DNA from: Paramoeba atlantica
Lineage: Eukaryota; Protista; Discosea
DNA: 64,000 nt
Direction of reading: 5' to 3'
NCBI GenBank assembly: GCA_977017575.1
Contig: CDRNVI010000169.1
Coordinates: 1-64,000 of the forward strand
Shown: positions 24,668 through 32,435 of the stretch, piece after piece
Numbering within the stretch: position 1 is the first letter of the stretch
How the letters are laid out: each line of letters opens with the position of its first letter
The notes under the pieces: generated by a model
What the model was told of the DNA's origin: nothing
Databases searched by the model: none
What the model saw: the letters and a program-made list of their open reading frames with translations, nothing else
Translations under genes and position numbers: made by a program

Positions 24668-26014
24668 ATGCGTGAAATTATCTCTCTTCATATTGGACAA
24701 GCTGGTGTCCAACTCGGTGACTCTTGTTGGGAGTTGTTTTGTCTTGAACATGGAATCAATCCAGATGGATCTGTGACCAAAAAGAAGGCTTCAAACTCGT
24801 TCACTACATTTTTCAATGAAGTTGGATCTGGAAAGTATGTTCCTCGTTCGGTTTTTGTCGATTTGGAACCTTCTGTGATTGACGAGATCAGGACTGGTCC
24901 TTATCGCAAGTTGTTTCATCCTGACCAATTGATTTCTGGAAAGGAAGATGCTGCCAACAATTACGCTCGTGGACACTACACTGTCGGAAAGGAACTTGTT
25001 GACAAAACATTTGATCGAGTGCGAAAAGTTGTTGAACAATGTCAAAACTTGCAAGGTTTTATGGTGTTCCATTCAGTTGGTGGTGGAACTGGATCTGGTT
25101 TTGGTTCTCTTCTTTTAGAACGACTTTCTCTTGAATACTCAAAGAAGACAAAGCTTGATTTCTGTATTTACCCTTCTCCTGAAATGGCAACAAGTGTTGT
25201 TGAACCATACAACAGTGTTTTGGCCACCCACGCTCTCTTGGAACACACAGATGTTGCGTTTGTGCTTGATAATGAGGCAGTTTATGATATTTGTCGCCAA
25301 TCTCTCAAAGTTCAAAAACCTACTTATCAAAACTTGAATCGATTGATTGCTCAAGTGATTTCTTCAGTGACTGCTTCTCTCCGTTTTGAGGGGGTGTTGA
25401 ATGTGGATATCAATGAGTTTCAAGTGAACTTGGTTCCTTATCCTCGTATTCATTTCTTGATGTGTTCTTATGCTCCAATTCATGCCGCTGAACAAGCTTA
25501 TCACGAAGCATATGCCGTCTCTGATTTGACTTCTGCGTTGTTTGAACCTGCAAACATGTTTGCTCGTTGTGAACCTCGAAAGGGAAAATATATGGCTGTT
25601 TGCATTATGTATCGTGGTGATGTTGTTCCAAAGGATGTCACCAGTTCGATTCAAGCCATGAAAACGAAACGTGATATCCACTTTGTTGATTGGTGTCCCA
25701 CTGGATTCAAGAGTGGTATCAATGGACAGGCTCCTATTTCTGTTCCTGGAGGAGATTTGGCTCCAGTTCCTCGTGCTGCAGTGATGTTGTCCAATACAAC
25801 AGCTGTTGGTGATCTTTTCCGTCGTATGGACGAAAAGTTTGATATGATGTATGCGAAGCGAGCTTTTGTTCATTGGTATGTTGGAGAAGGAATGGAAGAG
25901 GGAGAGTTTGCTGAAGCTCGTGAGGATCTCCTTGCTTTGGAAAAGGACTATGAAGAAGTTGGAGCGGACACTGATGTTTCTGTTGCTGATGCGTCTGCTG
26001 TTGATGAGTTTTAA
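24668..26014 (+). CDS. TUBA: Alpha-tubulin (divergent), intronless
   Basis: [22 protein letters not shown] signature, [16 protein letters not shown]. 448 aa. Confidence 0.99.
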
Positions 26015-27246: not shown

Positions 27247-27793
27247 GTCAGAATGCTGCTGTGTGGGGGGGTGGGTGGGTGAGAGGGAGAAAAGAAAGAG
27301 GTTTTTGAGATCAAATAAATAAAAAAATGAGAATATTGAAGAGTTAAATTTAAAAATTGTCTTGTCTTCAAAAAAAAAAAAAAGAAATATTTTTAATATT
27401 TAAAAAAGAAAAAGAAAAAGAAAAAGAAAAAATAAATATAAAGAATAAAAAGAAATAAGAAAAAAAAAGAAATTTTGGAAGAAACACTTTTATTTTGAAA
27501 ATAAAAAATTGATCTTAATCAAGATTCATCCTCTGCCCATCAGAAAAAATCTCTTCTTTTTTTAATCCTTTAGCTTTCAAGAAGGGGTGTTGGAGAAGAA
27601 AAATCCCAATCCATCTCACAATCCCTGATCAAATTTTAGTTCCAACAGACACTTTCCAAACGAGATTGAAGTTTCACAAAAAAAAAAATTGGTTCTCAAA
27701 AAGAAAAAAAAGGGAAAAAAGAATATTTCCAAATAAAGACTCTTCCAGTCCAAACAAAGAGAGCGACATCAGCACCAGCGTTTTCGCTGCTAT

Positions 27794-27817
27794 GGAATTG
27801 CTGGAAAAACACTTTTA
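27794..27817 (+). repeat. Left terminal inverted repeat
   Basis: 24/24 match to the reverse complement of 29801-29824. Confidence 0.95.
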
Positions 27818-27880
27818 GACCTGAGAATTAAATATTTGAAGAAGCAAAGAATCAAAATAAAAATCAAATTAAAAATTATT

Positions 27881-28747
27881 TTATTTAGCAGGTTTAATAG
27901 GATCAAGAGAGACAATCACATGATCATCATCTTTCTCAAAGGGAATCACAATTGTGACCCAATGAGCATCAGATGTGTTTACTTTTACTTTCTCTCAGTC
28001 TTGGTTAATTGGATAAGGGGAATGAACAAAAATTTCACATTTTTTCTCCTGAAGAGAATACTCATTTGCTTGGATCTTAGTGATGTTAGAAATTTCTTGA
28101 AGGTATGACACACTTGGGGGGGCAGATGTAAGTGCAATAGTGAGGCCATTTGTCTCAAGTTTTTCGATTGCAATTTTGGAATTGAGGAAACGAGAAAAAA
28201 TCAGAATCCAATCCTCTTTTGTCTCGTGGGTGAAGAAGAGACCTCCATCAGAAAGACAAGATCTAACACTTCTCTCAACAACCTCCTCAAGAACAATAAC
28301 CTCCTCCTCATCCCCCTCTTCCTCATCATCCAAGTTTTGAGGTGTATAACCAATGGCCACCTGCTCCGATGCATCTTTCCCTCAAGAAAGAAATTTTAGT
28401 AAATCCAAAAACTAAACTGAAATTGAAAAATAAAACAAACATTTTTCAGGGCGCTTAATACTTGGGTCATTTGGTGGGGTAAGCTTTGCAAGGCCATTAA
28501 GACGAATATAATCAATGCGATTGCTCACACTTTTGCCATTAACATCCTCACCAAGGCTGTGATCAAGTCTGAGCTGGGAAGCAATCTCAGCTGGGGACAA
28601 TCCTTTGTTATAGAGCCTTGCAAGGTCAGCTGTGTACCTGGAAAGAACACTCCCTCTCCGCTTGGATTCCTTTGTGGGAAAGGCTTCCTCTTCCTCCTTT
28701 GTCTTCGTTCTTTTTCTCTTTCCACCACGCAGGTTCGACGAACGCAA
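27881..28747 (-). pseudogene. Transposon accessory gene: NLS + HTH + acidic linker + HSP20/alpha-crystallin-like domain. No ATG (TTG at 28747) and one in-frame TGA (27995-27997)
   Basis: Exon 1 KRKRTK...LARLYNKGLSPAEIASQL...GKSVSNRIDYIR; 60-nt GT-AG intron 28381-28440; exon 2 ...HETKEDWILIF...NGLTIAL...SPYPINQD*EKVKV...HWVTIVIPFEK to TAA at 27881. Confidence 0.65.
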
Positions 28748-28816
28748 AAAAAAAACCAAAAACGGCGTTCCGAAAATTTCCTGCACCCTTTTTTTTTTGG
28801 CTATGAAAACACACAC

Positions 28817-28861
28817 AAAAGTTGCAGGAAAACGTCGGTCCGATGTTTTCCTCCAACTTTT
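28817..28861. promoter_or_regulatory. Imperfect ~21-bp-arm palindrome in the transposon's bidirectional promoter, containing TIR-like motifs
   Basis: AAAAGTTGCAGGAAAACGTCG-gtc-CGATGTTTTCCTCCAACTTTT. Its arms resemble the TIR core TTGCTGGAAAAAC. Function is inferred. Confidence 0.55.
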
Positions 28862-28876
28862 TTTTTTTTTTTTTGA

Positions 28877-29782
28877 ATGGCAGCAGAGACTGATGATGAG
28901 TGGATTTCTCTTGGGAAACGTTACACAAAGTCAATCCAAGAAAGAAATTTTCTATCCTCCTTTGGTCTTCAAGAACTTTACCTGTTTTGTGGGATTGGAT
29001 TCGAAGTTTGGACAATTGGCCAAAGGGGTGGGGCGCTTTAAAGCTTCTTGAAACTCTGAATTTTTTGAAAGATCCTGGACCAAACTGGGCATCCCTTTCT
29101 GCACGATTTGAACATGATCCAAAGACAATACAAAAAAGAATTTGGGAAACTCTTAATCTGATTGATCGTGCTCTTCCAGAGGTATTTTTTTTGTTATTTT
29201 TCTGTGTGTCACCCAGTGATTTTCTCACCCTTTTTTAAGTTTGATCTGTCAGATCAATTTGTTGATTGGCCTCACACTGTTCCTTCTGCTATGATTGATA
29301 CTTTTTTTTGTGTGATTGAGGCACCAGAATTGTTAAGACATGAGTACTATAATCCACATTATTATGGACATGGATTAAAGTACCAAGTTGTGATTGCAAT
29401 TGGCTGCCCAAGAATTTGTGCTTTGTCCCTTGGATTCAGAGGCTCTGCTTCTGATGTTGCAATTTGGAAAAAATCTGGGGTTTTGGAACATATGAGAGAT
29501 GATGAAGTCTTTCTTGCTGATAAATTATATCGTGGGGATCCTTCAAAATTCATCACTCCTTGTCCTGGAAAACGAAACGATTTATCTGAGGAGGACAAAG
29601 CCAGAAATTTTTTAATTTATCGAGCAAGACAAACTGTTGAAAGAGTGATTAAGAGAATGAGGATCTTTGGTGTAATTGCCAGTAAAAGTCACTGGCGATA
29701 TTCTCTTGAATTTCATCAGAAGTGTGTCAAAGTAGTTGGAAAACTCACAAATTTTTCTTTTCTTTTCAACCCACTTGGTTAA
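28877..29782 (+). CDS. DDE transposase (HTH_Tnp_4 + DDE_Tnp_4, IS5/Harbinger-like). One intron (29182-29239) and one -1 frameshift near 28945-28970
   Basis: HTH LLETLNFLK...LSARFEHDPKTIQKRIW. Catalytic-type motifs MIDT, GLKYQVVI, GSASD, LADKLYRG, RARQTVERVIKRMR. Confidence 0.9.
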
Positions 29783-29800
29783 AATCATTCATAAAGTGTT

Positions 29801-29824
29801 TAAAAGTGTTTTTCCAGCAATTCC
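29801..29824 (-). repeat. Right terminal inverted repeat
   Basis: TAAAAGTGTTTTTCCAGCAATTCC followed by AT. Confidence 0.95.
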
Positions 29825-29954
29825 ATTGAGCAAAAGGGCTCCACGAAAATTCGAGAAATTCGAGAAATTCGAAAAAAACTGGCCAAAAAAAAAAAGAAAC
29901 CTTTTTCTTTTTGCGTTTGGGAACCACCGGCTCGAATATTTTTCTCAACAAAGA

Positions 29955-30715
29955 ATGGAGTGTGCTTGGGAAGGTTGTGGGGAAAACAAGCATTTGAAAA
30001 AATGTGGAAAATGTAAAGCAGTTTCCTATTGTTGTGTTTCTCATCAAAGATCTCACTGGCCAATACACAAATGGTCCTGCCACTCGTCTTCGTCGTCTTC
30101 CTCTTTGTCTTCCTCTTCCTCTTCGTCGTCGTCTTCCTCTTTGTCTTCCTCTTCCTCTTCGTCGTCGTCTTCCTCTTCATCGTCGTCTTCCTCTTCGTCG
30201 TCGTCTTCCTCTTTGCCTGGTGAAGAACTTTTTTTTTTGGTTTTTGTTTTTTTGGTTTTTGTTTTTTGGTTTTTGTTTTTTTGTTTTTTTGTTTTTTTTT
30301 TTTGAAAATTGATTCAATAATGGAGGAGGAGACCATTTGGGTGAGTGGAGGGCTCTTAAATGAATCTCGGTCTCCTTCAGACCCAAGGAGAACTCTAGAT
30401 GGGGAGTATGTTCTTCTTGAACAAAAATTCAGTTCAAAAAATCACTATGTTCGAAAAGATTCAGAGGGAAATATCACTGGCAACATTTGTTATCATCAAA
30501 TTGGACAGTGTTGGACAATCAACCCTTTCAAAAGTGCGAGTCTTCGATGGAGTTTGAGCCAAATGGAACAAAATCCTGGTTCTCTTGAACCTCCCTTTGG
30601 AGAATGGTTGCAAGAGAAAGCTTATGAGATGGGAACTAGCGACTATCCGGAAGAGAATCAACATACTGTTGTCTTAGACAGAATGGTTTTTTCTTCTTTT
30701 TTCGAAACATTTTGA
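29955..30715 (+). CDS. MYND zinc-finger protein with poly-Ser linker and uncharacterised C-terminal beta-rich domain
   Basis: CAWEGC...KKCGKCKAVSYCCVSHQRSHWPIHKWSC is a MYND finger. A T-rich intron lies at ~30230-30325; its exact junction is uncertain. Confidence 0.75.
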
Positions 30716-31262
30716 ACTTCTTCTTCTCATATAATTATCAATATCGTTAGGGTGCGAATGTCAAACCTGCCAAAAGATCCTTGTAAAACAATATTTTCGC
30801 CAAAATAGTTTTCTCTGTTCCTGATTTTCTGTGAGATGATGGCGCAAATGAGAAAAAAGAAAAGGGAGATTTTTTTTTTTTGGTGTGGTACTCCATTGAA
30901 GATAATAGAGATCCCAGAACAACTCCATTTTCTCAAAAAGATAGAGGGAAGAGAGAGAGAGGGGGTAAATAGAAGTTACAGGATGATATTATTGTTTTGT
31001 GATATTTTGATGAAAACAGAAAACATTCAAAGATTTGAAAGTAAACTTTTTTTTGAGTTTCTTGTTTGCCAATGCAAGAAAAGGAATCATCACCAAAACT
31101 TTGTTTGTGGAAAACCTTTCGTTTTCCGTCACCGTTTTGTGTTTTAAACTCGAACCAATTTCAGAGAAAAAATTTCTTCTCACGCAGAGAAAAACCAGCA
31201 AAGTTTTTCGACTTTTCTTTTTTTTTGTTGTTGAGGAATTGAACTTTCCGTTTAGTTCAGTC

Positions 31263-32435
31263 ATGGGGTGTGGTTCAAGTCACAATGTCGATGAATCTGC
31301 ATACAACAAGAACAAACAAATCAACCGATACTTGAAAGAGAGCAGCCAACTCAACATTTCAGGAAACATCCGCCTTATGATGCTGGGCCACCAACGATGT
31401 GGAAAAACCACTTTTTGTCAACAGTTGAGAGTGTTGTACAGTGAGGAACCATTCTCCAAGGATGAAAAAGAAGTCTATCGTGAACTCATCCACGCCAAAA
31501 TCGTCTCTGCCTTAGCAAGGCTCTGCGGTGAAGTGTTGGACAGCGAGTCCATTGAATTGCAGGAAGAGAGTAAATTGAGGATGACGAATTTCGAAGAGAA
31601 ATATGGCCAGTTAGCCCCGATTGCAACTCTCACCAGATATGCTCTCAAGATGGGGTATGGTCGGACAAGTTCCAGTGATCTTCAAAATCCTCGCCCAACG
31701 TTTTTGATGAATGAGCAGATGATAAAAGATATTCTCTCACTTTGGAAGGATCCAGCCATTCAAGAATCTTGGCAACACACTACACCCAGCAGCTACGAGC
31801 TGACCTCCCCTCTCTTGGGATACTTCATGGACCATTTTCATCGAATCACAATGGTGGAAGAGGATGAGGAGAAAACCATCTCTTACATCCCAACAGCAGA
31901 AGATATTTTACATTGTGGGTTAAACTACCAAATTATTGAACAGTTCATTTTCCAGGTTGGCGACGACACTTTTGACATATACGAGTATGGAGGAGTCAAA
32001 CCAAGAGCACCAGAGCGAGATTTCTTGGAATATATGGCTAATGCAGCTCTTATTCTCTATTTTCTCTCTATGGATACATATGGGAGATATGAATCTGGAA
32101 ACATATTTGCCTCCGAACTCGAGCACCTCGACGAATTTAAAAAGTGCAAACGATTCCACAACATCAAAATCATCATCTTTCTCTCCAAGTGTGATGTTTT
32201 TCGAAAAATCCTCGAAGATAAACCCCTTTCCTCTGTATTTCCCGAGTTTAAGGGGAAGGATACATATGAGGGAGCGATCGAGTTTGTGAAAGAGAAGGTG
32301 AGAGAGAACGCGGGAGAGAGGGTGGCGTTTGTGGTTGAGACGAATTGTATGGATGTTGGGGATGTGAAGTATGGTTTTGAGAGTGTGCTGGGCACTCTAC
32401 GTCGTTTAACCACCATCAAACCTGCTGTTCGTTAG
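31263..32435 (+). CDS. Atypical heterotrimeric G-protein alpha subunit, intronless
   Basis: MGCGSS lipidation N-terminus, P-loop GHQRCGKT, helical domain (LWKDPAIQESW), YEYGG, LSKCD, TNCMD. 390 aa. Confidence 0.9.
   Translation: MGCGSSHNVDESAYNKNKQINRYLKESSQLNISGNIRLMMLGHQRCGKTTFCQQLRVLYSEEPFSKDEKEVYRELIHAKIVSALARLCGEVLDSESIELQEESKLRMTNFEEKYGQLAPIATLTRYALKMGYGRTSSSDLQNPRPTFLMNEQMIKDILSLWKDPAIQESWQHTTPSSYELTSPLLGYFMDHFHRITMVEEDEEKTISYIPTAEDILHCGLNYQIIEQFIFQVGDDTFDIYEYGGVKPRAPERDFLEYMANAALILYFLSMDTYGRYESGNIFASELEHLDEFKKCKRFHNIKIIIFLSKCDVFRKILEDKPLSSVFPEFKGKDTYEGAIEFVKEKVRENAGERVAFVVETNCMDVGDVKYGFESVLGTLRRLTTIKPAVR

Follow-up and report, generated by a model that had tools for sequence, protein, structure and literature searches.

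A compact two-gene PHIS transposon of Paramoeba atlantica with a partner gene predicted to join an HTH-like domain to an HSP20-like beta-sandwich

The gene on the minus strand at 27881-28747 of the 64,000-nucleotide stretch of Paramoeba atlantica DNA that we analysed (hereafter the window) is the partner gene inside a DNA transposon of the PHIS superfamily. At a probability of about 0.72, we regard it as the accessory gene of a compact two-gene PHIS transposon, encoding a partner protein that would combine an HTH-like with an HSP20-like domain and act by a mechanism like that of the Harbinger partner. The window copy is a pseudogene, worn by C>T and G>A transitions, and cannot make the partner protein. 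Its relatives form a previously unnamed protein family, absent from Pfam, whose members run from a basic N-terminus through an HTH-like domain and an acidic linker to an HSP20-like sandwich. The textbook example of DNA binding and catalysis divided between two proteins is the two-gene PHIS transposon, whose partner protein hosts have repeatedly domesticated as a regulator (NAIF1, HDP2, MSANTD, ALP). Full-text literature searches returned no transposon partner described as carrying an ACD or CS domain, nor a helper that combines HTH-like and HSP20-like domains; such a helper widens the known repertoire of transposition helpers.

Counting the AT dinucleotide on each side, the whole element measures 2,035 bp and spans 27792..29826. 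Its terminal inverted repeats (TIRs) are 27 nt long and start with GG. One lies at 27794..27820 on the plus strand, on the side of the partner gene (GGAATTGCTGGAAAAACACTTTTAGAC, with AT before it), and the other at 29798..29824 on the minus strand, on the side of the transposase, with AT after it; they enclose the partner gene and a divergent transposase gene. The 24-nt core of the repeat has two matches within the window, against zero expected by chance. A second assembly, ENA ERZ24900291, from the same or a very closely related organism, contains three related places, and a word-index search with the C-terminal piece of the window gene matched only near-identical copies at these three. The first (L001) is an independent insertion, and its similarity to the window runs exactly from 27792 to 29826. 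The second (L002) is the same locus as in the window, adjoining the same G-alpha gene, while the third (L003) is a further insertion, interrupted by a contig end, that has its right end in common with the window element. Complete relatives on four contigs are 1,989-2,082 bp long and have the ends ATGG...CCAT. Thus TIRs bound both genes and independent insertions have identical ends, which are the marks of a two-gene PHIS element.

AT is found at both flanks in each of the seven insertions or elements that were read, next to TIRs beginning GG. The three-base flanks differ (AAT/ATA in the window, TAT/ATT in L001) and agree in AT alone, and we therefore reject both an ANT duplication of the Pangu type and a TWA duplication of the Harbinger type. 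According to the PHIS survey, Pangu elements have a three-base 5'-ANT-3' duplication and a partner without known motifs, partners being otherwise of the Myb/SANT or YqaJ type. The ends of the window element instead fit those of ISL2EU, which has a 5'-AT-3' TSD and TIRs starting GG (PMC4482050), with AT as a putative duplication; AT flanks and GG-starting TIRs are what the two have in common. The described ISL2EU elements belong to animals, have a mean length of 4.8 kb and encode a THAP-containing transposase and a YqaJ exonuclease partner (PMC4482050), whereas the window element is ~2.0 kb long and has a 283-aa transposase, the pieces of which have no Pfam match to THAP, and an HTH plus ACD-like partner, which has no Pfam match to YqaJ.

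The transposase gene lies on the plus strand. Exon 1 (28877..29181) encodes an N-terminal helical region and carries a 4-bp deletion near 28969/28970 that causes a frameshift; the four extra bases present in L001 and L002 restore a single frame of 103 codons. A GT..AG intron of 58 nt and phase 0 follows (29182..29239), and the matches in relatives are separated likewise. Exon 2 (29240..29782) encodes the DDE_Tnp_4 catalytic domain (PF13359, E 5.6e-23 in a Pfam scan), contains the motifs IDTF, LADKLY and VERV, and is 38-57% identical to its counterparts in eight metagenome contigs (L005-L012). On all eight, which are the contigs with DNA upstream of the partner gene, both transposase exons lie upstream of that gene on the opposite strand, at 35-57% identity to the window transposase. 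Precomputed DDE_Tnp_4 calls concur for four of them (L005, L009, L011, L012). The earlier note on this DNA had taken the protein to be transposon-encoded and had named homologues without linkage to transposases as the observation that would count against it; what we observe is linkage to a DDE_Tnp_4 gene on every one of these contigs.

The partner gene consists of two exons on the minus strand. Exon 1 (28441..28747) opens with TTG where its relatives have their start Met, and encodes a basic cluster (GGKRKRTKTK, KESKRRG) and a predicted HTH-like domain of three helices, SRYTADLARLYNKGLSPAEIASQL...NRIDYIRLNGLAKL, at 28478..28639. Exon 2 (27881..28380) encodes the acidic linker, the predicted HSP20-like domain and a C-terminal tail, and closes with a TAA stop at 27881-27883. 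Between them we place a GT..AG intron of 60 nt and phase 1 (28381..28440), absent from the earlier note, which splits a Trp codon into T at 28441 and GG at 28380-28379, the product reading ...RPEK-W-KDASEQ... This model is preferred because six relatives (P0007, P0018, P0030, P0031, P0012, P0028) have T-rich sequence at the same spot, read through by gene callers, and because the intron-less P0009, at locus L004, has a W at the splice position (...PRTW-RGAAA...). The exon encoding the helical domain lies upstream of the one encoding the C-terminal domain at every locus examined. The predicted sandwich, a C-terminal helix-and-seven-strand unit, maps to 27938..28300 by homology to residues 138-262 of P0009 (E 6e-6), and is crossed by an in-frame TGA at 27995..27997. 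The 37 aa behind this TGA align to WLVxxIPF, the best-conserved motif of the family, so that reading through the stop recovers a true continuation of the domain, as the earlier note had done. That note's reading of the strand also holds: translation of the minus strand from 28747 to 27881 gives, in order, a basic N-terminus, LARLYNKGLSPAEIASQL...KSVSNRIDYIR, the acidic linker and a series of strands.

Relatives were sought with the two exons, and with the pieces on either side of the TGA, as separate queries. An exhaustive protein search with 27998-28300 (minus strand) returned 16 representatives at E<=1e-3, which, besides the near-identical P0002, are 27-37% identical to the query; two profile searches enlarged the family to ~30 metagenomic relatives at 25-70% identity. 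Both C-terminal pieces of the window gene, before and after the TGA, align to the family. The five full-length members (P0009, P0030, P0007, P0018, P0031) have a common plan of basic N-terminus, helical domain, acidic linker and, last, a ~125-aa C-terminal domain. Among three relatives, pN is 0.26-0.31 and pS, which is saturated, 0.69-0.74; as pN lies far below pS, we conclude that the partner is under purifying selection. None of 31 family members has a Pfam match at E<=1. In Pfam scans of the separate pieces, exon 1 gave only DUF6115 (E 0.02-0.035) and one copy GIY-YIG (E 0.057); both were taken as chance matches.

Pfam scans of the C-terminal window piece at E<=1 and at E<=10 returned nothing, a PDB sequence search with it gave no meaningful match, the family profile, run against the PDB sequences to E<=10, picked up no sHSP, and the sequence-feature search of the ESM Atlas was uninformative (best score 0.79). 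The fold was approached through P0009, an intact relative ~30% identical to the window protein, which was modelled with AlphaFold2 from an alignment of 31 rows. The model has a mean pLDDT of 82.9, with both domains above 93 and disordered linkers; the truncated domain piece of the window protein, folded alone from its single sequence, reached a pLDDT of 36. In P0009 the C-terminal domain comprises a helix (138-155), four strands, a second helix (201-211), which occupies the loop that joins strands four and five, and three further strands, and it ends in a short tail with alternating hydrophobic residues. Every strand listed in the earlier note coincides with a strand of this model.

Three structural comparisons of the model lead to the same superfamily. 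Foldseek against the PDB placed sHSP/alpha-crystallin or p23 structures in 45 of the 46 top rows (best E 1.2e-3), with TM scores by target of up to 0.69 and an rmsd of 3.3 Å. VIA-align, run independently of Foldseek on 48,161 representatives, gave as its best match the ACD of Hsp20.1 (Z 9.1, 2.5 Å over 75 of 87 residues), followed by MjHSP16.5 (Z 8.9), the CS domains of Sgt1 and Shq1 (both Z 8.2) and p23 (Z 6.8-6.9). When the top Foldseek chains were examined again with VIA, 38 had Z>=8, and all 27 of those listed were ACD or CS domains; the alphaB-crystallin ACD superposes on the domain over 85 of 87 residues at 3.2 Å. In the shape search of the ESM Atlas, all five nearest rows shown (one per family set) were 100% PF00011. 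We stress that in VIA-align values of Z 7-8 are common for models without true relatives and that Z 8-9 is barely above this level. The HSP20-like (ACD/CS) fold is nonetheless supported by the model, because one superfamily tops three independent lists and because the alignments cover the whole of their targets. The earlier note's assignment of the domain as an ACD, made from a pattern of strands, is thus upheld at the level of the predicted fold, which on P0009 came out as a beta-sandwich of the ACD/CS type where that note had anticipated an ACD; since Pfam and the family profile are negative, the domain is to be described as having an HSP20-like fold and not as a member of the Pfam HSP20 family.

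A competing explanation of these results is that the domain has no relation to alpha-crystallin and CS, being an analogous or simply generic beta-sandwich that serves as an unspecific scaffold, or an artefact of AlphaFold. The failure of every sequence and profile search to give an HSP20 or CS signal would agree with this, as would the low residue identity to the structural matches (8-18%), the modest Z values and the two extra helices of P0009, one within a loop (201-211) and one before the sandwich (138-155). We nevertheless think it unlikely: three algorithms, each with its own library, put the same superfamily on top with no Ig, FN3, C2 or other sandwich, the low rmsd values quoted above extend over nearly whole targets, and pLDDT exceeds 93 throughout the domain.

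Within the superfamily, the ACD and CS assignments are tied, the Z values for the model being alike. The seven-strand sandwich superposes on the sHSP ACDs (PF00011) of Hsp20.1 from S. solfataricus, MjHSP16.5, Hsp26 and alphaA- and alphaB-crystallin with Z 7.6-9.4. The conserved WLVxxIPF, a last strand followed by Pro, is placed, as we take it, like the GVLxIxxPK strand of the ACD, and the helix between the fourth and fifth strands presumably stands where non-metazoan sHSPs have their beta6 dimerisation loop. The tail pattern of the family (VIVSL, VIAEL, LQIEM) recalls the IxI tail of sHSPs, which we note as a lead only. The family differs from the sHSPs in having no match to their profile, in the DNA-binding-type domain to which the sandwich is fused and in being encoded by a transposon. 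CS/p23 domains (PF04969; Sgt1, Shq1, p23, NudC, PIH1D1), which have the same superfamily fold, match with Z 8.0-8.8 and give the lowest rmsd of all (2.3-2.9 Å over 75-81 residues). The CS domain is a compact sandwich of seven strands that lacks the long beta6 loop; in the window family the loop presumed to correspond holds a helix. There is no Pfam match to CS in the family, and the nearest ESM Atlas clusters shown are all HSP20, not CS-only. Both kinds of domain generally mediate dimerisation or protein contact, and the adaptor function that CS domains have between proteins would suit the role proposed below.

In the P0009 model the N-terminal domain has three helices (18-45, 50-61 and 70-82; pLDDT 94-97), in keeping with the HTH that the earlier note had read from the window sequence. 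It resembles HTH DNA-binding domains with VIA Z values of 5.9-7.0, weak for so small a helical fold, the matches including Tn3 resolvase (1.4 Å over 46 residues), the phage small terminase, GcrA, DeoR and the Mos1 transposase. The Myb domain of TRF1 is one among many three-helix domains that match (Z 6.1), and Pfam gave no Myb/SANT match in the partner or in family members. The loop between the helices of the helix-loop-helix has eight residues, more than a classical HTH has there. The model supports an HTH-like domain, for which DNA binding would be the expected function.

Separately, the N-domain profile matches, weakly and repeatedly, the N-terminal domain of eukaryotic uS15/RPS13 (E 0.011-0.2), and 9g25_J, a chain of a pre-ribosomal particle, superposes on residues 31-80 of the domain (Z 7.5, 1.2 Å over 49 residues).

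The closest known system is that of the Harbinger partner (Harbinger3_DR ORF1 and the domesticated NAIF1 and HDP2), which is likewise encoded by a second gene beside a DDE_Tnp_4-type transposase and likewise has a small helical domain of DNA-binding type together with basic clusters. It differs in having a Myb/SANT trihelix, where the window family has no Myb/SANT match and helices nearer to a simple HTH and to the uS15 N-terminal domain; the window family in turn adds an HSP20-like beta-sandwich, which is not reported in Harbinger partners. PMC9392472, citing Sinzelle 2008, describes the Myb-like partner of Harbinger as binding both the transposon ends and the N-terminus of the transposase and as importing the transposase into the nucleus, and describes transposition as requiring both genes. 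By analogy, the basic cluster would carry the window-family partner into the nucleus, the HTH-like domain would bind the ends of the element, and the beta-sandwich would dimerise the partner, hold the 283-aa transposase, or both, so that the transposase held by the partner would be imported and assembled on the ends. We consider a Harbinger-style division of labour of this kind the most economical and the most likely reading, in which DNA binding, import, transposase contact and dimerisation are all functions that the partner would be expected to have. The family is conserved, under selection and compact, with elements of ~2 kb, and it uses a predicted HSP20-like sandwich rather than Myb alone; with a transposase of 283 aa, a partner of ~270 aa and TIRs of 27 nt, it would make a small and tractable system for the study of how a partner and a transposase recognise one another.

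A more specific form of this reading is conceivable, and we put it forward tentatively, as a conjecture that we would not expect to hold in full. It supposes that this PHIS lineage has swapped the Myb-type helper for a fusion of a DNA-binding domain with an sHSP/p23-type domain, and that the fusion acts as a chaperone-like clamp, dimerising on the ends and holding or assembling the transposase, possibly by way of host Hsp90. If true, no earlier cut-and-paste transposon would have an accessory factor with a chaperone fold, and the pairing of Harbinger-type and ACD proteins in the IDM complex of plants would gain an independent precedent.

How the element has fared in this genome is apparent from the window copy and the three copies in the other assembly. 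Substitutions inside the element among these four copies number 92, of which 88 are transitions and 4 transversions; of the transitions counted, roughly half fall at CpG. At the position of the in-frame TGA, L001 has CAA and the other three copies TGA, while relatives in the family alignment have ordinary residues. TGA and CAA are each one CpG transition away from CGA, and we therefore regard the TGA as a decay scar of an ancestral Arg codon that carries no signal for recoding. Exon 1 of the window copy contains no in-frame ATG; the TTG at 28745-28747 stands where the aligned relatives (P0009, P0030, P0007, P0018, P0031) carry Met, and it is present in all three copies that cover the start of exon 1. 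The window copy of the partner gene has in addition a 3-bp deletion, and the L002 transposase has three stops of the type CGA>TGA. Among the copies read from this genome, none is intact. The window copy is accordingly functionless; it is of value because it leads to the family and because it exemplifies a transition-only decay that is confined to a repeat.

This decay bears on a second alternative, close to what the earlier note had suggested, in which the partner serves anti-silencing, or acts on chromatin, as a module that, like IDM2/IDM3, recruits acetyltransferase or demethylation machinery, and in which the element would preserve the ancestral state of the HDP1/HDP2-IDM association. The destruction of the copies by C>T transitions, of which half lie at CpG, indicates that the element faces a cytosine-directed attack, and the Arabidopsis IDM complex likewise unites Harbinger-type transposase and partner proteins with proteins of ACD fold, the Harbinger-derived HDP1 and HDP2 co-purifying with IDM2 and IDM3 (PMC5339849). 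In that complex, however, IDM2 and IDM3 are proteins of the host in their own right and form a bridge from MBD7 to IDM1, and HDP1/HDP2 reportedly do not interact directly with IDM2, IDM3 or MBD7 (PMC5339849), which makes the parallel a loose one. The ACD proteins of the plant complex are encoded by the host, whereas the ACD-like domain here lies within the transposon's own partner protein; the likeness is one of analogy only. Moreover, the family is seen only within ~2-kb elements, adjoining the transposase, as would be expected of a transposition factor, and the decayed copies show no sign of having been protected. We therefore hold an anti-silencing role to be improbable and retain that of an accessory factor for transposition.

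The proposal that the window gene is functional after all, its TGA read through or recoded and its translation started at a non-AUG codon, can appeal to a frame that stays open and conserved beyond the TGA and to a TTG exactly at the relatives' Met position, but we dismiss it as highly implausible, given that the TGA/CAA pair across copies reflects the decay of CGA, that the transposase beside it is frameshifted in the window and broken by stops in the other assembly, that a 448-aa tubulin ORF and a 466-aa ORF containing the G-alpha gene run unbroken through the window under the standard code, so that TGA is no sense codon there, and that nearly all substitutions are transitions, whatever the codon position.

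Comparing window 27658-32356 with the same locus in another assembly (L002:1-4702), we observed 14 substitutions, every one of them within the element (2,035 bp), whereas the 2.67 kb of flanking sequence is free of differences. Thirteen of the 14 are transitions, and derived T/A states are present in the window version and the L002 version alike. This pattern points to repeat-targeted cytosine deamination after insertion, of a methylation- or RIP-like kind, or to conversion between copies.

Both element genes keep their intron positions (partner, window 28381-28440; transposase, window 29182-29239) in the related elements of the metagenome contigs L005-L012, although these relatives are only 25-57% identical. 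In the window and in these contigs the introns are T-rich and contain no stop codons; therefore automatic gene callers run through them, leaving poly-Phe/Leu/Ser inserts in the deposited proteins. In P0003, the deposited protein of the independent insertion L001 (L001:4001-4429), a TGA within the intron is rendered as Trp, and P0003 is flagged as not translating to the query. Evidently the L001 contig was annotated under a different genetic code; the intronic Trp is an annotation artefact and lends no support to recoding.

The three-helix domain of the partner (window 28478-28639, -; residues 34-88 of P0009, the full-length relative modelled by AlphaFold2) was compared by both profile and structure. 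The N-terminal domain of the eukaryotic ribosomal protein uS15/RPS13 gave repeated weak profile matches (E 0.011-0.2) over aligned residues 34-82, and the top structural match was residues 31-80 of chain J in 9g25, a pre-ribosomal particle (Z 7.5, rmsd 1.2 Å, 22% identity). In one full-length relative, P0030 from contig L011, a basic N-terminal arm immediately ahead of the helical domain carries an AT-hook-like motif, KRGRPPGR (residues 20-32).

The 130-bp spacer separating the divergent element genes holds a 33-nt imperfect inverted repeat (window 28759-28849, 73% complementary) bordered by long A/T runs; the repeat may belong to a bidirectional promoter serving both genes. Just beyond the TIR on the transposase side, an ORF (29950-30300, +) shows a MYND-type zinc-finger pattern (CAWEGCGENKHLKKCGKCKAVSYCCVSHQRSHWPIHKWSC), after which comes a long stretch of serines. 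An intron-less α-tubulin gene (24668-26014, +; Pfam Tubulin, E 2e-64) encodes a C-terminus ending in DEF and an N-terminus that appears unusually divergent.
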